DNA of 64,000 nt, taken from the NCBI GenBank assembly GCA_964188305.1, contig OZ076894.1; one strand, 5' to 3'. Below are positions 2,074 to 45,239 of the stretch, in pieces. The notes under the pieces are model-generated. The model saw only the letters and a program-made list of their open reading frames with translations. It had not been told where the DNA came from and did no database searches. The first letter of the stretch is position 1, and the number at the start of each line of letters is the position of its first letter. The translations under genes and the position numbers were made by a program. The stretch comes from Podarcis bocagei. Its lineage: Eukaryota.

Positions 2074-4440
2074 GTGAGGTACTTGCTTGTGAAAGATGAC
2101 AGATTTGCTAATGGTTCTCGTTGAAATTGTACTCTGTGGAATAAAACTTTCAGAAGAGTTCTAGAATCTCATGCAAAAAAAGGGGTGGGACTCTCCAAAT
2201 AGAGTAAACTTTTATTTGTGTTAAAAATGTACACCTGATATTTCACCTTTATGGTTCCATGCTCAGCTATGGAACAAGAAGTATTGAGCCTCACCATGTA
2301 GGCAGAAGTAGTTAACACACAGGGTGCGGGTCAAATCTGGCCAGCCAAACCACAAGAAGTGACCCTCCAGCCCTTTCCCTCTCTCCAGTTTTATCATTCC
2401 ATTTTGCCAGATAATAAATCTCCCTGTCTGTCTTGTTGAGGGTGATTTTTTTTTATTTTATAAAAGAGCTCTTTATCTCCCTATGGAGGATTTCTGAAAA
2501 ACGTTCTGAGTGATCTTTCGTCTCTGATCTCGGCACTCATCGCCACAAGCACTGAGATCTGAGATAAGCCCCTCTACATCTTCTGTAAGAGTACAAGACA
2601 GTGTTTTCTTCCTCTCCAGTGCTGGCGTGTGGGGAGGGTTCAAACCCTGCCTTTTTCAACAGATCCATTGATGGCGATGGGAAGGCTACCAAGGCTGACT
2701 TTGACTATGTGCATGTGTGCAAATGCCTTTGTATTTGTGTTCGTATGCAGGCGTGTAGGTCAAAGGGATGGAACAACTCACCTTCGAGGAGATTACTTGA
2801 TGCTTTTTAGTTTAGGGGGAAAGGCAAGCAAGGCGAGGAACATAATAGAGATGGCCTCTTTCATAATCCTTGAGCTCAGGGACATTCAGTGAAGCTGAAA
2901 GCTGGAAGACTTGGGACAGATAAAAAGAAAGGACTATTGAACTTGCTCCCACTGGAGACAGTGATGGCTGCTATCTTAGAGGAGGACACAAATTCTTGGA
3001 GAAGATGGCCTCTACCCATGATGGCCGTGCTGTGCCTCCACAGTTGGAGGAAGCAGTGCTTCTGAGCACCAGTTGCTGGAAGCCGCAGGAGTCCTGCATG
3101 TAGCTTTCCCACAAGCCCCTGGGAGAACAGGGTGCTGAAATAAATGGGCCATTGGCTTGATGCAGCTGGCCCTTGTGGCCAGCAGTTGTCAGGGTTATAA
3201 GCAGATGTCAGGGAACTGCCATCGGCTCAGAGGCGAGGAATAGAAGGGCAGTTGTATTACAGGGAGCCCCCGAAAATCTTGCAAAGCAGTTCCCTTCCGG
3301 GGAGGAGAAAAGCCCCACCTCTAGTGGGGAAGAGGTGGAAGGACCAGAGGATGCTGGTGGGAGCCTTAACACCACTCCTGGACAAGCCGGACAGGAGGGA
3401 AACACACCCTTGCCATTGGCTGTACTGCACAGTAGCCTAAGGCGCAAAGAGGGAAGGAGAAGGTTGGGGGTAACGAAACTGTTATGTTGACCACTCCCGG
3501 ATTCTTCTAGCGATTGAGCCAGACATGAGCTTTGGAGCTCTTCACTGAAAATAGTTTGCACCAAAATAAAACCCGTAAAACACAGGTTTGGAGTCCTGTC
3601 TGGTTACTCTCGAGCAACCGCAACAGCCATCTGACAGCAGATTTTGAAAGATTGTGACAACAGCAATAAGAAAGAGATCCAGTTAGTCTTGTAGACAATT
3701 CTGCTGCTGTAACTTAGGATGTTTTGGAAGAAAATCCACCTTGTCTTCCCAGTGCCTGCGACTTCCAAATAATTACATGGTCGTTTGACCCCTCTCCCGA
3801 AGTGCATTCTTGTAAGCTCATTGACGGTCTGCAATGTTCTCCCTCTTTGAGGTTGAGGGAATCTCCCAAGTCTCAGTTATATTCTCAGACTGACCTTAAT
3901 TAGACACTTTCCAACTGTTTCACTGAGGTCCAGGGAGGGCCGTTGCCAAAACAGCTGGCGTTTAAAAAATTAAGCATCTGCTGAAAAGCTTTGCCTAGAG
4001 CAGAGCCAAGGCATGAACTGAATTATTTCACTCTCTGTCTGAACTGGGTTGGAGAGGCTTCACAAAACGGTTCTGGGAATGCTAAGAGGGCTTAGTCTTT
4101 CCCCAAATATGGCTTAGTTCCCATGGCCTGCATGAAGCATAGCTGTGCTCAGGCCATTCCATTCTTATGAAATGCGCATTCTCATTCCTGGTGTGTCTCT
4201 CTCTCTCCCCCCCTTCTACTTTTTTGGGAGCAGATCAGTGTTTTTTGGGAAGTTTCCACAATGTTTGGTCTGAATTGGGGGAGGTTATTTTTAGAATGGA
4301 AGTGGCTTAGCAAATGTATTGGGACCTTCCAAGCTCTTGCTCAGCCTGTAGTCTTAATTGTTCTTTGAGTTCCTGTTTTGTTTTGCAAATCATACAATGT
4401 AACATTGATTTTTTTTAAAATTGTCATTTTTTTAAAACAG

Positions 4441-4526
4441 GCATTTGCTTTTGAAATCATTCAATCCACCCATGAGTACTGGAAGGCTTTGCTTCACAAA
4501 AAGGCTGATGGAGGCGCCATAAAATG
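4441..4526 (+). CDS. PPA2: PPA2 coding exon
   Basis: aaaacag|GCA...AAA TG|gtaag; AFAFEIIQSTHEYWKALLHKKADGGAIK(C); phase-compatible with neighbours. Confidence 0.93.
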
Positions 4527-4990
4527 GTAAGCATTCACTTGGCACACAGATCTATTGAAATCCAGTGTGAATTAATGCAAAATTGACATGGGTGGCTTTT
4601 ATTACAGTGGTTGCCTTTCTGTTCCTGAAGATCACTTCTGCGTACTGCCTTTGTTGGCAATTTCACTTAAATAAAATAATTAAGTCACAACCGCACGAGC
4701 CCCACAGATTATTCAGTAATTAAACCGTAGTAACGGCTCAAAAATAAATTGGCCTGTAATCTCCCACTTGTAATTTTGCTCACAAAAAAGGAGAGTGGAA
4801 AACCTTGGCTTTTGCTTGACTTTGCTCATTCTAGGGCCTCATCTGCACCATGATGCTGCTTTTAACAGCCATGGCTTTTCCCAAAGAATGCTGGGAACTG
4901 TAGTTTGTTAAGAGTGCTGAGAGTTGTTAGGAGGCTCCTATTCCCCTCACAATTCCCAGAGTTCCCTGGGAAGCGGGGTTAATTGTTAAA

Positions 4991-5785
4991 TCCAGGTTGA
5001 ATCCTGACAAGACAGAAGTACTGTCTTGCAGGTGTGGAGGACTCCCTGGTCCTGAATGGGGTAACTGTACCTCTGAAGGACCAGGTGTGCAGCCTGGGAG
5101 TCATTCTGGACTCACAGCTGTCCATGGAGGCGCAGGTCCAGGGCAGCTGTCTTCCAGCTCCATCTGGTACGCAGGCTGAGACCCTACCTGCCCCTGGACT
5201 GTCTCGCCAGAGTGGTGCATGCTCTAGTTATCTCTTACTTGGACTACTGCAACGCGCTCTACATGGGGCTACATTTGAAGGTGACCCGGAAACTACAACT
5301 AATCCAGAATGCGGCAGCTAGACTGGTAACTGGGAGCGGCCACTGAGACCATATAACACTGGTCTTGAAAGACCTACACTGGCTCCCAGTACATTTCCAA
5401 GCATAATTCAAAGTGTTGGTGCTGACCTTTAAAGCGCTAAACTGCCTCTGTCCAGTATACCTGAAGGAGCGTCTCCGCCCCCATCGTTCTGCCCGGACAC
5501 TGAGTTCCAGCGCCGAGGGCCTTCTGGTGGTTCCCTCACTGTGAGAATTGAGGTTACAGGGAACCAGGCAGAGGGCCTTCTTGGTAGTGGCACCTGCCCT
5601 GTGAAACGCCCTCCCACCAGATGTCAAAGAGAAAAATAACTACCAGACTTTTAGAAGACATCTGAAGGCAGCCCTGTTTAGGGAAGCTTTTAATGTTTAA
5701 TAGGTTATTGTATTTTAATATTCTGTTGGAAGCTGCCCAGAGTGGCTGTGGAAACCCATCCAAATGGGCGGGGTATAAATAATAA

Positions 5786-5818
<33 letters not shown>

Positions 5819-5820
5819 AT
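4991..5820 (+). mobile_element. L2-clade LINE 3' fragment, decayed
   Basis: LNPDKTEV, LGVILDSQLSM, LDYCNALY, LQLIQNAAARL, LHWLPV motifs across frameshifts; (TTG)n tail. Confidence 0.85.
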
Positions 5821-5928
5821 AAACTACTCTGGGTAACACCAGCTTCTTATGTTCCTTCCTGTTCACGTTTTCTGTCATAGCACTTGACAGTCATGCCCCA
5901 GTTGTTGGTAATTCTGTTCTGTTTTCAG

Positions 5929-5998
5929 CACCAACACCCAGCTGGATACCAGTCCGTATTGCTGCAATGAAGAGGAAGTGCAAGCTATTGTGCAGTCT
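5929..5998 (+). CDS. PPA2: PPA2 coding exon
   Basis: ttttcag|C ACC...TCT|gtaag; TNTQLDTSPYCCNEEEVQAIVQS, completes the split TG/C codon. Confidence 0.9.
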
Positions 5999-6462
5999 GT
6001 AAGGGAATTTTTTTACATCCCGATTCTTAAATGTATGTCATTAATTGAAGCATAAAATTTCCAAATGTGCCACGAGGTGTAAAACAAAGGAAAGACCTGA
6101 CTTGAAAATTAAATGGAGAACACAGGTAGGGGGTTTGGGTGTGATGGAGGGAACCGGGGACCAGGAATCTAGGTGGCAAGGGGTAAAAATATTTCGCAGC
6201 TTTAAGTACTGTTTTTTTTTTACCATTTCTCAATCGGAGTAATTCCATTACCAGTCTTCTCAATGCAGTGAATGCATTTCTCTCTTTATTTATTTCTCTG
6301 AAAGCTCCATAATGCTTGATTTTCTATCTCACTAATACTCAATAATAGCAAGGTGGACCATTTGTATCTCGCCTACTTGGTGTGCTGGCTTTGATTTGCC
6401 CTGTTGTCATGTGCTACTAGCACTTAAAGCTCATTGACTAGCAGCAGTATACTCTTAATCAC

Positions 6463-6811
6463 GGGACGCGGGTGGCGCTGCGGGTTAAACCACAGAGCCT
6501 AGGACTTGCCGATCAGAAGGCCGGCGGTTCGAATCCCCGCGACTGGGTGAGCTCCCATTGTTTGGTCCCTGCTCCCTCCAACCTAGCAGTTCGAAAGCAC
6601 GTCAAATTGCAAGTAGATAAATAGGTACAGCTCCAGCGGGAAGGTAAACAGCATTTCCATGCGCTGCTCTGGTTTGCCAGAAGCGGCTTAGTCATGCTGG
6701 CCACATGACCCAGAAGCTGTACGCCAGCTCCCTCGGCCAATAAAGCGAGATGAGCACCGCAACCCCAGAGTCGGCCACGACTGGACCTAATGGTCAGGGG
6801 TCTCTTTACCT
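6463..6811 (+). mobile_element. Sauria SINE, full length
   Basis: tRNA-like head (B box GGTTCGAATCC), ...ctttacctt tail, 13-bp TSD TACTCTTAATCAC (6450-62, 6812-24). Confidence 0.9.
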
Positions 6812-6879
6812 TACTCTTAATCACAAAGAGCATACTTTATTGCCTTGTGTAATTCAATGTATCTTGCAGGAAAAGATAA

Positions 6880-6881
<2 letters not shown>

Positions 6882-6929
<48 letters not shown>
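6882..6929. repeat. (GT)n microsatellite
   Basis: Direct reading; similar (GT/CA)n tracts at ~33181-33217, ~48051-48096, ~49778-49806, ~56909-56951. Confidence 0.95.
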
Positions 6930-6931
<2 letters not shown>

Positions 6932-7681
6932 GAAAGAGAGAATTATTTAAAATATTATTTTCGGTCCATCCACATGTTTCCATTTTCTTTTTTAAGAACA
7001 CAAAAACTTAAGCAAAGGAGCTAAAAATATCAGAGCCTGCTTTTATCCTAAAAATGAAGCCTCGCATTCTGATCTGTTTATAAATGGGCTTTGCCAGCTG
7101 CAATGATTGCATCAGTTACGTGGAGAGTTTTTCCGCCGCCCCCAGGAGTGTTCCCAGCTATTTAGCCAGCTGATTTTTAACTATTAATGCGCCAAAGGGC
7201 CCCGTTTGTAAACTGAGTCATGGCAGTTGCACAGATGCAGCCCGTACAAGGAAGCTTCTGTTTTCTACGAAGAATCTAATCCAAGCTTTCAGAGACTCTT
7301 CTTCCCCCACTTTTGATTACAGCAGCAAACATAGTGCATGTTCAGAATGTACAGCGCATGCTTTAAATGTGCTGTAAAAGTATGGTGCCTTTCAGTGCAA
7401 CCTTTTTATGAAATGAAATGTATGCTTGTTTGTTTTTGTTTTGTTTTTAAATCCCTACTCAAAGTCAGCCCCTTTTTGTGTGTGCGTGAGCCCTTCAGCT
7501 ACACCCTTCTGCAATTAACCCTAAGTGTATGTAACTGAATTAATTGCATGTTCTCCCTTTGCTGACTGCTGCCTCCCCTTCCCTAGTTTCCCCTAGTGTC
7601 AAATTTTTGATTTATAAGCTTATTGGATCGCTTTGCACGTTGGTGATGCAAAGTAAATACAACTGACTGTTCTTTCTGTAG

Positions 7682-30379: not shown

Positions 30380-31075
30380 CCACTTTTGTGCAGAATTTGA
30401 TGGATTTTAAAAAATATCTATTTAATAGAGATTATGGGATAGTATTAGATGTGTGTTGTAATCAATGTATTGGGGCAGTTCAAAGTATATAAGGAGCATC
30501 TCATGGAGTGACGTACGGTGTGAAATGAAAAAATCCCAACCTAAGTTTACTAGCAGAGTTAATTTTTTGGACCACTGCAATCAGTGCCATGAAGAACACG
30601 CAAGGCAAACTGCTGCCAGAAGCTGAGGAATTCTGGTGTGGGAAAGATCTGAACCTTGGGAAGTCCTGGGGAAGTCTTTCTTGGGGATTTGGCCATTACT
30701 TTCAATACAAGATCAGAAGAGGTCCCAAATAACTCCTTAAGATGTTTCATCCATTGTTCGGCTTCACATAATTAGAAGTAATTTTTATCCCACTTTCCTC
30801 CATTATCATAAGTACATTTACAACAATTCTAATTTGCATTAGTCACAGCACACAGTGATCTTAGGAGTAGTAGCTATTTCTAACTAATTACTCTAAAATA
30901 AGAAGCATGGGGTGTTTAAATGCACTCTAAAGATGTCTTTCAAGCTTTTTTTAAACTTCAGATTCCCAAGGTCTCTGCCAAAGACTTATTATTATAATGA
31001 AACTTAATGTGATTGCAAAATAAATCAGGTTGTTTTAGTGTTGATAACTAGCACCCCATCCATTTTTTAGCCTAC

Positions 31076-31165
31076 CTGGTTGTTATACGCATCAGGTGCC
31101 AGTTTCTTGTAAGTGGGTGCCATCAGAGTCGAGAGAGTTTGCAAATTGGACTCCAGCTTTTCTTC
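31076..31165 (-). CDS. TET2: TET2 exon 8
   Basis: 90 nt; [30 protein letters not shown]. Confidence 0.97.
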
Positions 31166-31306
31166 CTGTTTTTCAGTAAAGGAGAGATTTTGCGTGTTAA
31201 CATTCAACTGTATTAAGTTTACATTGTAGTCCTAATTATCCATTACAAGCCAAAAAAAGGGGAGATGGAACAGAGATATTGCAATAAAGTTATTGCAGAT
31301 ACAATA

Positions 31307-36090: not shown

Positions 36091-36595
36091 CTTTAAAAAT
36101 CCAGACAAATGAATTAAAGTAAGTATTAACATTTGATCTGAGCAACAGAGATTCACATGCAGTGTGTGTGTATATATATAGAGAGAGAGACAGAGAGTCG
36201 AGTCAGTCTTGTGCCATTATTTGTCCATTCTACATCTGATAATCTAGTGTTTTATCATATCCAACGTATATGGAAATGTAAGTATGCAGAGGAAAAGGAG
36301 GCAACGTCTTGAAAAAAGGTGGACTATGCTTTAAATTTGCCGCTAGGTGAACAAAGGCCTTCTTAAATTGGTGTTGAAGAGAAACAAGACCTAGAGTCCA
36401 GAATTTAGCTAATTTCAATTATATGTGTCTTACATATAATGAAATATCATCCGCATATAGCATTTGTTTGGCTGCCACTTGATTCTAACAACACAGAACA
36501 GGGGGGAAAACTCACCCCGGCATAAAAAAGGGTACTATGCTGTAGAAATAATGACCAAGTTTCCAAGCCAAAGCTGGTCATTTATTCCTTTATTG

Positions 36596-36731
36596 CAGGC
36601 ATCTCCAACCTTTGGCCCTCCAGATGTTTTGGACTACAATTCCCATCATCCCTGACCACAGGTCCTGTTAGCTAGGGATCATGGGAGTTGTAGGCCAAAA
36701 CATCTGGAGGGCCGCAGGTTGGGGATCCCTG
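36596..36731. mobile_element. Short palindromic hAT-type MITE (gactacaactcccatca family)
   Basis: Whole element is a hairpin; TSD ctttat(t/g)g; relatives at ~1372-1605 (two), ~10226-10320, ~16075-16190, ~19640-19760, ~40250-40390 and 55115-55252. Confidence 0.82.
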
Positions 36732-37162
36732 CTTTATGGAATTCAATGGATGGTACTAGATTCCTTAGTGTAAATAAGCAGAAGGAAGATGAACTCTTAA
36801 TTGTGTTGTGGTTTTTGTTTTGTTTTGGTGGAGTAGCCTGCTTGAGGTTTTCTTTCCTTGAGCTGCATATGCCTTTTGCCATCTCCCCTATGTACCTTGG
36901 CATGTGTAGTGGCCCGACTGGGAATGCTAGGTCCTTTCCTGCTTTTACAGTCAATGCCAATTCGCTAATTTGGCAGGCTGGCCCTGTTGCTGGCATCTGC
37001 CTCAGAGCAGGAAGATCAGGACAGCAAGCCAGCCGAACTGTCAAATGTTGTCGTCCTCCAGTGAATAGCACAGTGCCCTGTGTTGGCAAAGCAGGAATAG
37101 CCAGCCTACCAAATAATTACTTGGGAGTCTGCAATTGTGGTCTTCTTTGTGTGCAAAGACCG

Positions 37163-37165
<3 letters not shown>

Positions 37166-37242
<77 letters not shown>
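37166..37242. repeat. Compound (GT)n(GA)n microsatellite 65 nt downstream of the TET2 exon 4 donor
   Basis: Direct reading. Confidence 0.95.
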
Positions 37243-37244
<2 letters not shown>

Positions 37245-37305
37245 TAAATCCTGACATGCACAATAGATAAATTTTAATCTGCCGTGTGCCTTAGCAAATT
37301 CATTA

Positions 37306-37401
<96 letters not shown>

Positions 37402-37778
37402 TTAAAAACAAACAAACAAACAAAAAGGTTAACGCTGTATGCTTTTGAAGATGTCTTTAAAAGATATTACATAGTAAAGCATAGGTTCACCTTATACACA
37501 TATTTTGCTCACTTCAGGAAAAAATTCTAAATGAAATCTGTAACAAGACCTGTTTGCACTACACATATGAGTAACACCAACCCCAAAGACTCTTGGCAGG
37601 TCATCTGTGCACCAGATCATTCATGGACTGATAGTAGGGCTAGGGGAAGAGTTACTATTTTCACTTGGGAATCGTTTTTTTTAAAAAAAACTTTAAAAAT
37701 GCAAATAGGGAATTATTGTACCAAACAAGAGAGTGAGCAATATTTGGGGCAGTTCTAATGCATAATGCCAGATGAATG

Positions 37779-37832
<54 letters not shown>

Positions 37833-37877
37833 GGTTTTGGTGTCTTCGGGTGTCTTCCCGTGTAAGAGTTGGGGTGT

Positions 37878-37923
37878 CTAGGCGACGTTTCGACGAGGTC
37901 TCACTCGTCATCTTCAGGCTGGT
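37878..37923 (-). ncRNA. Mirror copy of the minimal hammerhead motif, sense to TET2 pre-mRNA
   Basis: Reverse complement gacgtttcgacgaggtctcactcgtcatcttcag at 37884-37917. Confidence 0.7.
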
Positions 37924-39168
37924 GCTTTCGGCTTCTTGTTACTGGAACAGAGCAGGATCTCAGTGTTTGAGTTCCTATAAATACTGTTGAGGGGGTGTGG
38001 TGTATAGCCTCCAACGTTCTGGGCAGAGAGGAAGTTTCCAGGTTAGTGTGCCTTTTCTTCTTTTGTTCATTAATTACTTGAGGGATATCTTGAGTGATTT
38101 CTTGAGTGATATTCTGAGTACCACTTAGGAGGGTCATTAGGTGTGGATTAGTTGCTAAAGCTTTCGTGTCTTGACCTCTTGAGCTTGTGAAGAGTTTTTT
38201 CTGAGAAGATGGCTGTACTGCACTTAGTTGTGCTCTGGCTTGGCTTCGTGTATAGGGGCGAGCTGTGGTTTTGTGCCCTGTGCCAGCCAGATCTGTGTAG
38301 GGATTGCAGGGGGGTGCAGCATCCGGAGGTGCCACTATGGTTTGGCTACTGGATGGTGTCTGTAATTTATCTGTGGAGAGGGTCTGGGTTTGGGTCTGGT
38401 GTGGTTGATTGGAGATGGCGTTCTGTGTGCCTCTGGTTCTGGTGTCGGTTTTTGTGGGGAGGGCTAATTTCCAGATGTCTGGCAGGCGGGACGTGTCGTC
38501 ACGCTTGTTCATGTTGTGAGGGTGTTTCTCTATCTCGATGGCTTCCATGATTATTCTCTTGTGGTGATGTTCCATGTTAAAGAGCAATTTGGAATCTGCA
38601 AAATTAATTTCGTGTCCTGTTTCTTTCATGTGTTGGTAAAGAGAGGAAGTTTTTTCTTCTTTTTTGACGGCATTCTTGTGTTCTGCGATACGTGCATTTA
38701 TTCGTCTGTTTGTTTGTCCAATGTATGTGGCTGGGCAGACTTTGCAGGGTATTTCATAGACCCCTTGGTTTTCTAATTGGATTTTATCTTTGGGGTTTCT
38801 GAGGATATTGGCTATTTTTTGGTTGGTGCAAAAGGCTGTTTTGATATTGTGTTTATGGAGGATTTTGCTAATTTTATCTGTAGTGCCCTTGATATAAGGA
38901 AGGAGGGCCATGCCATTGTTTTCTTCTGTGTCTTGGTTTTTGGGGGGTGTTTCTTTTTGGATTAGCTTCGTAACCCTGTTTTGCTGGTATCCGTTGGCGA
39001 TTAACACATTTGAGAGATTCTGTAACTCAGTTGTCAAGTGGTCTTTGTCAGCCAGGCGTTTGGTTCTGGAGATGAGAGTCTTGGCTACGGAGTTTATTTG
39101 TGCAGGGTGGTGGTGTGATTGTGCATGTAAGTAGCGGTTGGTGTGTGTTTTTTTCCGGTAGATAGTGT
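37901..39168 (-). pseudogene. 5'-truncated PLE ORF: RT thumb + GIY-YIG endonuclease + low-complexity C-terminal tail
   Basis: Open frame from the junction (TIYRKKTH...) to ...PEDDE* with no stops or frameshifts; lacks RT core and start. Confidence 0.9.
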
Positions 39169-39917
39169 CTTCCTCTCTTTACCAACACATGAAAGAAACA
39201 GGACACGAAATTAATTTTGCAGATTCCAAATTGCTCTTTAACATGGAACATCACCACAAGAGAATAATCATGGAAGCCATCGAGATAGAGAAACACCCTC
39301 ACAACATGAACAAGCGTGACGACACGTCCCGCCTGCCAGACATCTGGAAATTAGCCCTCCCCACAAAAACCGACACCAGAACCAGAGGCACACAGAACGC
39401 CATCTCCAATCAACCACACCAGACCCAAACCCAGACCCTCTCCACAGATAAATTACAGACACCATCCAGTAGCCAAACCATAGTGGCACCTCCGGATGCT
39501 GCACCCCCCTGCAATCCCTACACAGATCTGGCTGGCACAGGGCACAAAACCACAGCTCGCCCCTATACACGAAGCCAAGCCAGAGCACAACTAAGTGCAG
39601 TACAGCCATCTTCTCAGAAAAAACTCTTCACAAGCTCAAGAGGTCAAGACACGAAAGCTTTAGCAACTAATCCACACCTAATGACCCTCCTAAGTGGTAC
39701 TCAGAATATCACTCAAGAAATCACTCAAGATATCCCTCAAGTAATTAATGAACAAAAGAAGAAAAGGCACACTAACCTGGAAACTTCCTCTCTGCCCAGA
39801 ACGTTGGAGGCTATACACCACACCCCCTCAACAGTATTTATAGGAACTCAAACACTGAGATCCTGCTCTGTTCCAGTAACAAGAAGCCGAAAGCACCAGC
39901 CTGAAGATGACGAGTGA
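39169..39917 (+). pseudogene. Inverted, shorter 5'-truncated copy of the same PLE ORF (C-terminal part of endonuclease + tail)
   Basis: Translation identical to the last ~249 aa of the minus-strand copy. Confidence 0.9.
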
Positions 39918-39940
39918 GACCTCGTCGAAACGTCGCCTAG
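39895..39940 (+). ncRNA. Minimal (short stem III) hammerhead ribozyme motif in PLE terminal repeat
   Basis: CTGAAGA(39901-07)-T-GACGAG/tgagac/CTCGTC stem II-GAAA-CG-TC; palindromic ACGT in place of stem III; stem I weak (2-3 bp). Confidence 0.7.
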
Positions 39941-41646
39941 ACACCCCAACTCTTACACGGGAAGACACCCGAAGACACCAAAACCTGCATTCCTGTACCC
40001 GTGAAAATCTACGAAAGCAAATATATATATATATATATATATGGCATGGTTAATACAGTTACTGTAATAGGGGTCAATTAGGATTTTCTCTGTTCCCGTT
40101 ACCATCAGGAATCAATAAAAGTTATTGCTGTGGAATAGCTAATGGAAGAAAATCAGATAGGGCATCTTCTCGACTTTTGATATGTCAGCACCTCTGCTTA
40201 TTGCTTTTTTGGTGCATAAATATTGGAAGGTAAAATCCCTTTATTACATAGGCAAGAAACCTATGACCCTCCATATGTTGCTGTACTACAAGTCCCATTT
40301 TCCCTGATCACTGGCCACACCGCCTCGGGCTAATGGGAGCTCAAGTCCAAGAAGAACATCTGGAGAGCCACAAGTTCCCCATTCCTGCTTTATTACATCT
40401 GGTTCGACCATAAATAAAGGTTGGAAATGAGTCTAGATTTTCATTGATAGTATTAGCCTTTTAGCTTTGCAGCAGTTCCTGCTATCTATATATGCACCCC
40501 AAGGCTCAGTTATTAAATTTTTTAAAAAGGTAAATTGGGGTTCAGATAAATTCCTTTAAAACCATCTGTTGAAAATGCAAATGCCTCAGTGTGACCGGTT
40601 CTATAAAGGCATAGCAAAGTTTAGTACTATGCGTTGAAAGATTCTCATGCATCTGTGTCCATTATTCTCATTGTGGTGCATACATGGAGGACGACTGTTC
40701 AGGCCCAAATTGCATGCATCTTGAAATGTTTCAAATAAAATGGGGCATGGGGATATACCAAAGGGGTGTACAGTAGAAGAGGATGCTAAATGTCCTGCTG
40801 CTCTTCTCTACTCCATAGCCAGATGCCAATACAGAGAGAGAGAGAGCCCACCTTGAGAAAAGGGCAGCGGCTGTAGAGGGAAGGACCACAAATGGAGGAT
40901 TCAGAACCCTCAGACCATACATTAAATCACACCTCTATTCCTTTGTGGCGCTAGGCCAAAGGTCTTTTATGAAGACGTTATCTTTATTATGTGCAATTTG
41001 GTCTTAAGTCATTCTGCAACAACACTTTTCCAGTGTCCTAATTCACCATGACAAAACTAGATGCAATTTCCTCATTTTACTTGCACGGGTTATTTCAAAG
41101 AGACAGTTTTCCATTCTGTTTGCCTAGGAAATCATCTTGCATTTCTGGCCTTGCTCAGGCGATACCTTCAGAGGAGAAATCATACCTGCAAGAATCTCAA
41201 CTCCACATTTGCCTTCACCTTGTCCAATCACACCCATATAATGTGCTCAGAATGTAACAAACCAGCCATCTTTTTATGCCCATATTTGATTGTGGGGAAA
41301 TCTAGACACCATAAACCACTCCCAAAGCAAAGTGGAGAGTGGAGTCAGGATAAATCCATAGCCAATTCAACTCACAGTATTTTCCATGAAGGAAACTGAA
41401 GGACAGAGTGGCTGGAACTGCAAGAGCCTGAGATACTTATAATTTTATGGATAAGAAATTCCAGCCTGCGAACTGAGAAATGCAGTTTGGGACATTTATT
41501 TGAGAAGACAAGGGAAGTCTTCCCTATAGGAGAAAGGGGAGGAGGGTGACGTGAGGAAGGGAGGTGGCTGGGCTTGGAAAATTATAGTAGAATGGTATTA
41601 TTGTATTCATTTAAAAACAAACTCTGAAACATCAAACTCAACTCAC

Positions 41647-44600
41647 CAACGCAGCTACAAGATGGGAAATCGTACTGAGTTTTGACAGGTGTGTCCAGTA
41701 GGTTTTTCACAGGAGTATCTAATAACTTGGAAGGTGACTCTAAAAAATGATTGAGAGCTGTTCCAGCAGCCGTTCTTTTGGTTGGTGTTTTTTCAATGGA
41801 ATGAATGGGCTGTTGATCTAAAGAGGCTGCGTGGCTGTTGAAATCTGCAGCGGCGGAATTCCTTGACAGAATAGTGATGGGTCCCACAGTTTCAACTTTC
41901 ACATGTTTCGGTGATTTGATAGTAAGGGACTTGTGATCAAAGGGTGTTCTGACCTGAAACTGTTTCAGCTGCTGCTCCATGGTTTCGATTATACTCTTTT
42001 GTTGCATGTTCTCACAACCAAAGTGCTGACTCTCTTGTTTAATTGTTTTTTCCCACGCTTTGTTCTCCATCTGCCCAGCTGATGGAGGGGTGCAGACATT
42101 CAACTTGGAGCCAGCTTCCGCTTTAATAGGCTTGTGTCCCACACCGTGACAGGTGTCAGATTTGTTTTGTTGTTCTTGCCTGTTTAAGATGTGACACCTG
42201 AGAGCAGCATGCTTCTGAAAATCCCTTTGAGGTTGAGTTGGAAGATGGCAGCCTCTCTGATCAACTCCTGCATGGGACGCCGATTGCTGACTGTAGGGTA
42301 CGTACCTTTGCTGAATCTGGGCAGGTTGTGGGCTACACATGTTGCTGGTCAAATTAGAATATCCCTGTGTTTGCTGGAAGGGTAGTTGTCCAGCTGAAGT
42401 TGGTGGAGACTGGGAAGCTTCTTCCTGAAAGCGATGGGGCACATCTTGTTTGGGGGCCATACTATGTGTGTAATATTGCATATGCTGTAAGTCATGAGTT
42501 ACATTTTCTGCAAAGAGCTCAGTGTTCATAGGGTTTTCTTTTTTCTCAGAGACTAAGTGCATGTTGTTCAAGTAGGAATGCTGCATAACAGTATTTGCTT
42601 TGAAAGCATGATTGTAAAGGGAATCTTTACTGTTCATATCGGACACCGGTCCTGGCCTGACCTGGGAGTTTTGCATTGGGAAGTCAGTTGATTTGAAGTA
42701 ATTGTTTGCAGTTTCAAAACATTCTTCCAATTTAAGCTGACTGAAAGATGCCCCCTCTAGCTGCTGCTCTTGTCTGCTTTGGGAATGAGGAAAGGTCTGA
42801 GGAAGTTCTCTGCTCTTCATGTGCAATGATTGCTGCTGGGAGCCCATGGTTAGCTGTGGACTGTGTGGCAACTGTGTTGGCTGGGTCTGGAGCATCTGTT
42901 GCAATATATGTGAACGGAGGAACTGCTCATTTTCCAATGGTGGAAGATTTAAGTGCTGTGGCTTCATCTGTGACTCCAGGGACTGTTCATTGTGGTATTC
43001 AGCTTGCGGCTGAAAGTGGAAGTGCTTTGCATTTTGCTGCTGTTCGTGGGATTTGAGCATAGTATCCATCTTTGTAGGCTGTGGTGAGTGCTTTTGGAAT
43101 TGCTTTTGCTTCTCAGCTGTAAGATGAGGTGGCAGCTGTGTTGCCTCACCCTTGTACAGTGCTGGTATCTGCTCACATTGTGTGATGTTCTGGAAGCAAG
43201 TTTGCCCTGTAACCTCCTTTGATGCATTGGGGCTCCCAGGATATTGTTTTGGATGGGCCTGATCGGCTGAATTTGACTGAAGCTGAAGCATTGTCCTTAA
43301 GAGCACCTCATTTGATTTTTGGGGAGACTCACTGGGGCGAAAGTGAGGGGAAGATATTCCTGTCCAAGATGTCTGCAAGTGAGGGTGTGACTGATGAACC
43401 TGATTTTTCACCAAGTCTTTTTCATTGCTAGTTATGCTCTCCTGGTTAATTTGGCCCATGAGATGTTGATAATGTTGTTGCAACTCTTTACTGCTTCCTA
43501 CTATTTCTGTGTCTTGAACCTGTGGCTCTAGTTTTGACTGCAGTTCATCAGGATATTGTTGCCTGATGCCTGATGCCATTGCAGAAAGCATCAGATCTCT
43601 TGTTTCGTTGCCAGTCTGTTGTGAAACCTGAACCTCTTGTTGAAGACCCTGTTGAGAACTAAGTGCTTGCTGGCAAAGGCCAGGAATTTGTGCTGCAAGC
43701 TCCCCCTGCTGCTGCTGCTGCTGCTCTCCATTCTTCTCTTTCTTCAAATGAGTCTCTTGACTTTGGGTCTCATAATGGTTATGCACTTCTGAAACACTCA
43801 TGGAAAGAATGCTGTTTATTTCTGGAAGAGGAGAAGAAGCTGCAACAGGAGGTGGGCTGAAATAACTCTTCTTGAACATGGGGTCTTGTTGGAACAAAGC
43901 ACCATTTTCCTCTGCTGGCTCTGCTGGTCTCTCTGAGCTATTGTTATGAGCTTTCATATTGCTGTTGGGATTTAGTGAGAAATCTTGACTGGGCAGTGAG
44001 AAATCTTGACTGGGAACCTGCCCCATGTTTCCTGGAACATCAGTATTCTCTGTAGGGGACTGGCATGCATTTTCGGATTTTTGCTGCTCCAATTGCAGTT
44101 CTGGTTTCTGAAAAGTGTAGCAGGCTGGCAATGTGGATATCTTACTGCCGTCTTCTGTGCTGTGGACTTCAGTGGCCACAGAATCTAGCACCTGAGGCAG
44201 CTCAGAGTTTGAGGTTTGTGGGGAGTTGATCTGCCCTGAGGTATGGGATGAATGTGGTGTGCCACAAGTCGATTCATTAGTAGCCTGTGTGTTTATGGCA
44301 TTTGTAAGAGATGTGGTTTTCTGCATTGCAATGGACACATGATCTGGATTATACTGAGACAGCGTTTTCTCAAGGAGTTCACCATGCATGTTTTCCATAG
44401 AAGAGGCAGAAACTATAGCACCATTAGGCATTGACACCGCCTTGCTCTTGTAGAGCAAGGCAATGTCCCTGTTGTGGCAATTCATGTTTTCGCTCTCCTG
44501 TTCATTCTGAACCTGGGGAGCAGGAGGAGTTTCTGAAGCACCACGATTGTTTTTGGAGGACTGTATGAGAACTGAAGCTGCATCTTCTTCCATTCTAAAA

Positions 44601-45040
44601 CCCACCAAGTCCTCCTCGCTGCATGAATTGGGAACACTCGGTTGATCACTGCCATCCAAAGAGGTTTCTTTCCCTCCTTTTTCTTCTTCATCTTGTCTAA
44701 GCTTTTTGTTCTGGTGAAGCCCGTACAGAGAAGGCTCGCTGAAAGTGCGTTTTATCCCACCATTTTGCATATACCTGCCACAGTCTCTCTTTTCTTGCAG
44801 AAGGTCTGGGCTTATTCTGTTATTTGCATTTCCTCTGACAGTGTGCTTCATTCCATAGTTGGCCTTGAAATGCAGCCACGTGTGGTCGCCATTGACTTCA
44901 ACCTGGCCCTTCTCTGCTGGTGGGCTCCCATTCTGTAGCTTCACTGACAAAGGCTCTCCCTGGCAAACATGAGAAGGATGTGGTATTAGAAATGGGCTCA
45001 AACTACTGCCTTCAACATGGCTGGTTCTATCCTGTTCCAT
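41647..45040 (-). CDS. TET2: TET2 first coding exon (exon 3 by human numbering), N-terminal disordered region
   Basis: ATG GAA CAG GAT AGA (MEQDRT) at 45040; GGIKRTFSEPSL and LLDTPVKTQYDFPSCSCV motifs; donor G|gtgagt after 41647; acceptor ttcag| before 45085. Confidence 0.97.
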
Positions 45041-45045
45041 CTGGC

Positions 45046-45060
45046 CTACTCTGGGGCCAT
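45046..45060 (-). promoter_or_regulatory. Short upstream ORF (MAPE*) in TET2 5' UTR
   Basis: ATG GCC CCA GAG TAG ending 5 nt before the main ATG, inside the spliced part of exon 3 (acceptor at 45085). Confidence 0.6.
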
Positions 45061-45239
45061 CCACAAGGCTGCCCTCCTATTGTATCTGAAAGAGAGAATG
45101 GGGAAGGGGGGAAAATCCATGTTTATTTGATGCACGCTACACAAACCCAGATGGCAATTAAGCACTTCATCTAATGCACTTTCCTTCCTAGATCAAGAGC
45201 CTCATGGAAATTGTGACAGTCTAAAAGTGCTGGGATATA

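Follow-up and report, generated by a model that had tools for sequence, protein, structure and literature searches.

An inverted pair of 5′-truncated Penelope-like element copies in a TET2 intron of Podarcis bocagei

The window (the whole 64,000-nt stretch of Podarcis bocagei DNA that was analysed) carries TET2 on its minus strand. A 1160-aa minus-strand open reading frame at 41585-45064 is 97% identical to Podarcis TET2 and also matches squamate, turtle and bird TET2. All further TET2 exons were placed by tblastn downstream on the same strand, to 23422, and all are intact. Pfam recognized Tet_JBP in the last TET2 exon and gave no match for the 1160-aa exon or for ten other open reading frames of the window. 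As the earlier note had claimed, and as exon placement bears out, the host gene is TET2 and about half (51%) of a 4249-bp intron is filled by an element whose near end lies 430 nt upstream of the start of exon 4 (37397). This intron begins with a GT donor at 41646/41645 and closes with an AG acceptor at 37399/37398. The features of the locus are collected in Table 1.

Table 1. Features of the TET2 intron insertion and its surroundings, in window coordinates
Feature	Positions	Strand	Basis
TET2 91-nt exon downstream of the insertion (exon 4)	37307..37397	-	
TET2 intron (human numbering: intron 3), 4249 nt	37398..41646	-	Exon placement, splice sites
Left (TA)24.5 microsatellite, target-site remnant adjoining the 3′ end of the minus-strand copy	37781..37829	.	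TRF
Inverted-repeat arm 1	37828..38649	.	Self-comparison
5′-truncated PLE copy, 1339 nt, TET2 sense; RT C-terminal tail/linker, GIY-YIG endonuclease, 3′ region	37830..39168	-	
Mirror image of the candidate min-HHR, TET2 sense	37884..37917	-	Direct reading against published descriptor
GIY-YIG core with two Cys inside (CCHH type), straddling the arm/spacer boundary	38642..38764	-	Pfam PF01541 and motif reading
Spacer, 519 nt, 5′ stretch found only in the longer copy; predicted to form the hairpin loop	38650..39168	-	
Inverted 5′-truncated PLE copy, 820 nt, TET2 antisense; arm 2 is this copy plus the next 2 nt	39169..39988	+	
Candidate minimal hammerhead (min-HHR), PLE type	39901..39934	+	Direct reading against published descriptor
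30-nt PLE ‘tail’ extension, this end only	39989..40018	+	L006 match; absent at empty sites
Right (AT)11 microsatellite flank	40021..40042	.	Direct reading
Large TET2 coding exon upstream of the insertion	41647..45040	-	

Self-comparison of 36500-41500 revealed a single long inverted repeat, whose arms (37828-38649 and 39169-39990) are each 822 nt long, 100% complementary (0/822 differences) and 519 nt apart. A perfect repeat of 822 nt is far beyond chance, and the window contains zero N. The same reading frame is present in both arms, with stops at 37901-37903 on the minus strand and at 39915-39917 on the plus strand. The earlier note had described a palindromic element with mirrored coordinates and identical translations, and had proposed self-alignment as a check of arm identity; self-comparison and reading of the open frames support the palindromic layout, the arm coordinates and their mirror sum, and the identical translations. 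The arm ends hold as limits of the repeat but not as ends of the element, because the outermost 2 nt (AT) of each arm belong to the microsatellite or to the tail; the true element 3′ ends lie at 37830 and 39988. Nor are the arms inverted terminal repeats of one element, as had been suggested. Instead, the locus holds two 5′-truncated copies placed head-to-head, whose 5′ ends join bluntly at 39168|39169, neither filler nor microhomology being present.

On the minus strand, the positions from 39166 to 37901 form one open frame of 422 codons, in which the C-terminal part and linker of a reverse transcriptase (RT) are followed by a GIY-YIG core and then by a low-complexity tail. Pfam PF01541 matched this frame with an E value of 4e-4 and 21 bits, slightly under the 22.6-bit cutoff, and GVYEIPCKVCPATYIGQT followed by H...H was read in the minus-strand frame, giving a CCHH motif with two Cys within the core. 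A word search led to P0129, a protein of 735 aa from Podarcis muralis, with 98% identity across the first 215 residues; on alignment, the window frame is 94% identical to P0129 residues 365-719. P0129 contains RVT_1 at 152-330 and GIY-YIG at 499-538, and thus displays the order of RT and C-terminal GIY-YIG, the RT core being missing from the truncated window copy. Judged by sequence, this 94-98% identical relative places the family among the EN+ Penelope-like elements (PLEs), in agreement with the identity first proposed for the insertion. A CX2-5CxxC linker (Neptune/Nematis-type) was not found upstream of the GIY-YIG core, and the 60 residues before the core contain one Cys. Because this linker is missing, the element is classed as Penelope/Poseidon-like, by motif only.

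The right end of the insertion differs from the left in carrying a 30-nt tail, which the earlier note had not mentioned; it sits between the element end and (AT)11 and is absent from all empty sites (see below). The same 30 nt lie between (TA)n and the element end on one side of a second palindrome, at 2351-7091 of P. muralis sequence L006, which encodes P0129. Because the identical 30 nt recur there, the tail is templated by the element and is not target DNA. The L006 palindrome (4.7 kb) has (TA)n at both ends and a tail on one side only, and its arms show 1 mismatch and 3 gaps in 2341 nt. It resembles the window insertion in family (95-97% nucleotide identity), in the (TA)n at both ends, in the identical 30-nt tail and in its near-identical arms; the two differ in that the L006 arms are about 2.37 kb long and spacerless, whereas those of the window are 822 nt long and flank the 519-nt spacer. 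Near each element 3′ end in the window, a motif shows the published traits of a min-HHR, a candidate hammerhead by its letters only. Rfam, at gathering and at E≤10, returned no hammerhead and only spurious miRNA-like matches on (TA)n, but this blank says little because minimal PLE hammerheads lack helix III and are not modelled by Rfam.

These features closely follow published descriptions of the class. PLE insertions are highly 5′-truncated, often with a directly adjoining inverted 5′-truncated copy; their tail of 30-40 bp is often present at one end only; and their bias for microsatellites, including (TA)n, hides target-site duplications (Craig et al. 2021, PMC8557442). A 31-bp tail that is optional at one inverted repeat has also been reported, together with head-to-head as the commonest arrangement (Arkhipova et al. 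2013, PMC3846280). The window insertion has in common with Penelope of Drosophila virilis, Pen2a_Av of Adineta vaga and the Naiads the 5′ truncation and adjacent inverted 5′-truncated copy, the one-end tail of about 30 nt, the microsatellite target that hides the target-site duplication and the GIY-YIG CCHH endonuclease. Their min-HHR near the 3′ end has a candidate counterpart in the window. Unlike in those elements, both window copies are truncated, with neither a full ORF nor a direct pLTR.

The age of the insertion was judged from the orthologous TET2 region of five other lacertids, namely P. lilfordi, P. muralis, P. raffonei, Lacerta agilis and Zootoca vivipara. In 5/5 of these lacertid loci, the segment corresponding to window 37790-40038 is missing and the flanks are contiguous; the empty site in P. 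muralis carries a short (AT)5. The insertion makes the filled allele longer than the empty one by about 2.25 kb. An empty site was also detected in sequencing run X8 (organism F), in which a single 5663-nt contig connects 37769 and 40050 through some 31 nt. Because the site is empty in five lacertid genomes and in one further run, the insertion is young. Elsewhere in the intron, P. muralis differs from the window by 1.07% in substitutions, P. raffonei by 1.4%, P. lilfordi by 3.5%, and Lacerta agilis and Zootoca vivipara, which belong to other genera, by 6.2%. The absence of differences in 822 nt sets a 95% upper bound on arm divergence of 3/822, or 0.36%. Taken together with the intron divergence, the identity of the arms indicates that the insertion is younger than about one third of the time since the P. 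muralis split, unless the arms were homogenized. The youth claimed in the earlier note is thus upheld by the arms and by the empty site in five relatives. The L006 palindrome was considered as a clock for arm divergence and dropped, its arms also being nearly identical.

Homogenization would mean an older insertion whose arms have stayed the same through intrachromosomal gene conversion, as happens in the palindromes of sex chromosomes. That both the window and the L006 palindromes have almost no arm substitutions is what such a process would produce. The empty site in five lacertids, one of them only 1.07% diverged, nevertheless caps the age of the insertion whatever conversion does, and in run X1 the window copy carries the family majority letters (few variant rows), as expected of a recent copy. 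We consider an older, converted palindrome exceedingly unlikely.

Parts of the window were present in twenty runs from six organisms, and Logan contigs of four DNA runs were placed on 37420-40420. The raw RNA runs all come from organism F, whose site is empty. Word depth in the element was 1.2e5-8.7e5, compared with about 10-195 in the flanks, and so was 10^3-10^4 times the flank depth; the family is very high-copy, at 95% identity or above, in organisms A, B and F. A search of the window, and of 230 kb of lacertid DNA orthologous to it, returned no further copies of the element. Other copies are followed at the element end by (AT)n in three runs, indicating that (TA)n is the target of this PLE family. 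In 4/4 runs, other copies run on past 39168 into the element, and 39168 is therefore a truncation private to this locus. Run X1 also contains more than 130 joints in which arm 1 (+) is connected to arm 2 (+) at different points, each as one contig at single-copy depth. With moderate confidence, given that their shorter sides are only 21-28 nt, we interpret these joints as further head-to-head pairs of family members at other genomic sites.

The same contigs bear on whether the palindrome could have arisen during assembly, through a fold-back chimeric read or a repeat mis-join, with the true locus holding one 5′-truncated copy or none. In the four DNA runs, no contig was seen to span the central or flank junctions of the locus itself, as Logan contigs stop in the (TA)n tracts and within the repeat, and support for the assembled structure is thus indirect. 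The exact identity of the arms would also fit an artefact, and tandem and inverted PLE structures have been noted to cause problems in assembly (Craig et al. 2021, PMC8557442). However, the insertion is not symmetric: a 519-nt spacer separates the arms, and just one end bears a tail. Its unique flanks, unlike those of fold-back chimeras, line up in order with the empty sites of the five relatives. Moreover, L006, which was assembled independently, shows this architecture and this tail as well, contigs from raw data contain many other head-to-head joints at single-copy depth, and right-flank contigs of run X1, which probably represents the source species, match the window with 0 differences. 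An artefact is, in our judgement, very improbable.

Given a family that strongly targets (TA)n, two of its members might also have inserted independently in opposite orientations into the same (TA)n tract, abutting by chance. However, neither microsatellite nor filler lies between the two 5′ ends, and the arms show 0/822 differences although about a third of the family contigs in run X1 (2296/6432) are only 95-99% alike. Furthermore, head-to-head pairs that arise in one event are the published norm (PMC3846280). The coincidence of two insertions is thus an extremely doubtful account of the locus.

We therefore favour, with a probability of about 90%, a single recent retrotransposition of a very abundant Penelope/Poseidon-like GIY-YIG PLE into (TA)n within the TET2 intron, which left two 5′-truncated copies head-to-head. 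The PLE endonuclease would have cut the self-complementary (TA)n target, and both exposed 3′ ends may then have primed reverse transcription on the same template; alternatively, the enzyme may have jumped from the RNA onto the other cDNA or its own. The products would have been joined bluntly at 39168|39169, with their 3′ ends outward against (TA)n, and a 30-nt element-templated tail would have been left at one end. Because both copies would have been made from one template, the shared 820 nt would have been identical from birth. Snap-back self-priming at 39168 onto 38650 was also considered; it has no supporting microhomology and was not preferred over two-end priming. Neither the literature, in which the PLE life cycle is called undefined (Craig et al. 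2021, PMC8557442), nor the 39168|39169 junction, which lacks microhomology, discriminates between the priming variants. Two-end priming recalls L1 twin-priming, in which both 3′ ends of a staggered break are likewise thought to prime reverse transcription, yielding an inverted segment. However, L1 twin-priming copies different parts of one RNA and duplicates nothing, whereas the window arms share the 3′-terminal 820 nt. Because both arms hold the same 820 nt, the locus does not fit an inversion of the L1 type.

The earlier note had singled out the placement in TET2 and the apparent zero divergence as what made the locus notable. This emphasis does not survive the comparison with other copies: head-to-head is the standard PLE insertion form, the family has a huge copy number and L006 has only 1 mismatch in 2341 nt, so both zero divergence and an intronic position are what chance would lead one to expect. 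For so numerous a family, arrival in a TET2 intron calls for no particular cause. The observation is real but ordinary: a very abundant lizard PLE with recent activity has added one more copy, in the form of insertion by which its class is defined. Its value is modest: it provides a clean, dated example, with the orthologous site empty in five relatives, and an example of a one-sided tail. It also illustrates (TA)n targeting by a family without the CX2-5CxxC endonuclease linker proposed to read microsatellites, and it could be used as a natural allele to test the influence of a perfect long intronic hairpin on its host gene.

The pre-mRNA of TET2 would contain the antisense 820-nt copy first and the sense 1339-nt copy after it. 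In silico, ViennaRNA folding of 2163 nt as transcribed formed all 822 mirror pairs, with an MFE of -1786.5 kcal/mol. Consistent with the near-perfect long hairpin that had been foreseen for TET2 pre-mRNA, the repeat lies inside the intron and its predicted stem is a perfect 822 bp, so that on transcription of TET2 the intron could fold into this stem with a 519-nt loop. At the DNA level, a spacer of 519 bp makes cruciform extrusion unlikely. Intronic inverted Alu pairs, the main ADAR substrates in primates, are similar in that a retroelement inverted repeat within an intron is predicted to form long dsRNA in the pre-mRNA; they differ in that the window stem is 822 bp and perfect, whereas Alu pairs are about 300 bp and imperfect. 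Judging from such pairs, ADAR editing of the window hairpin is a reasonable expectation. Most likely, the stem would be edited, or degraded with the excised intron, like other intronic inverted repeats and with no known effect on TET2.

It is very unlikely, in our estimation, that the predicted, lineage-specific and perfect 822-bp intronic hairpin measurably alters TET2 output in carriers. If it did, the effect could arise through ADAR hyper-editing, through the production of siRNAs against the very abundant PLE family, through slower or altered splicing of exons 3-4 or through premature polyadenylation at the sense AATAAA sites at 39098 and 38702. The insertion would then represent a natural presence/absence allele for the effect of a long-dsRNA intron on a DNA-demethylase gene.

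The Penelope-like element (PLE) in the TET2 intron carries a 30-nt tail that is identical to one in L006, a Podarcis muralis locus with a palindromic copy of the same family, and at both sites the tail lies at a single end of the insertion. Since the two insertions arose independently, in different species, and share this one-ended sequence, the comparison indicates that the tail template is the element rather than target DNA. Sequence beyond the element ends in read contigs revealed strong (TA)n targeting by the family. This targeting occurs although the endonuclease, with its GIY-YIG core, lacks the CX2-5CxxC linker, the feature suggested to give Neptune-type PLEs their preference for microsatellites.

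Features of the PLE insertion and the surrounding TET2 gene
Feature	Position	Strand
PLE tail, window	39989-40018	+
PLE tail, L006	2395-2424	
GIY-YIG core	38642-38764	-
Homopolymer, both arms	38195; 39618	
Putative minimal hammerhead motif	39901-39934; 37884-37917	+; -
AATAAA hexamers in spacer (two, TET2-sense)	39098; 38702	-
Divergent TET2 segment	32533-32796	-
TET2 match overlapping it in query range	31073-31171	
Hairpin, next TET2 intron	36579-36748	
(GT)20 and (GA)18	37166-37242	

Many family copies in read contigs are missing one homopolymer base, which shifts the frame in the C-terminal tail, and in protein alignment P0129, the 735-aa protein encoded at L006, departs from the window frame at this homopolymer. 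The window frame spans 422 codons, of which roughly the last 100 probably represent read-through into the 3' UTR. A protein word search found 55–57% identity between the lizard PLE linker–EN region and beetle proteins (Anoplophora, Pyrocoelia, Harmonia and Aquatica). It also found PLE fragments inside the snake gene models "P2Y purinoceptor 1 isoform X3" and "acyl-CoA thioesterase 12", probably annotation contamination.

TET2 pre-mRNA contains a single sense copy of the putative PLE-type minimal hammerhead motif, which Rfam models did not match at either position and which would be expected to pair with its own antisense arm. The native part of the intron holds four AATAAA hexamers besides those in the spacer.

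Elsewhere in TET2, one segment shows 67% identity to residues 1264-1351 of the reference protein P0001, compared with 91–100% for neighbouring exons, and its query range overlaps that of another match; it may represent a mis-modelled or alternative exon in reference proteins. The TET2 intron that follows the one carrying the insertion holds a hairpin (75-nt arms, 81% complementary, 20-nt loop), and two adjoining microsatellites lie directly downstream of the 91-nt exon.
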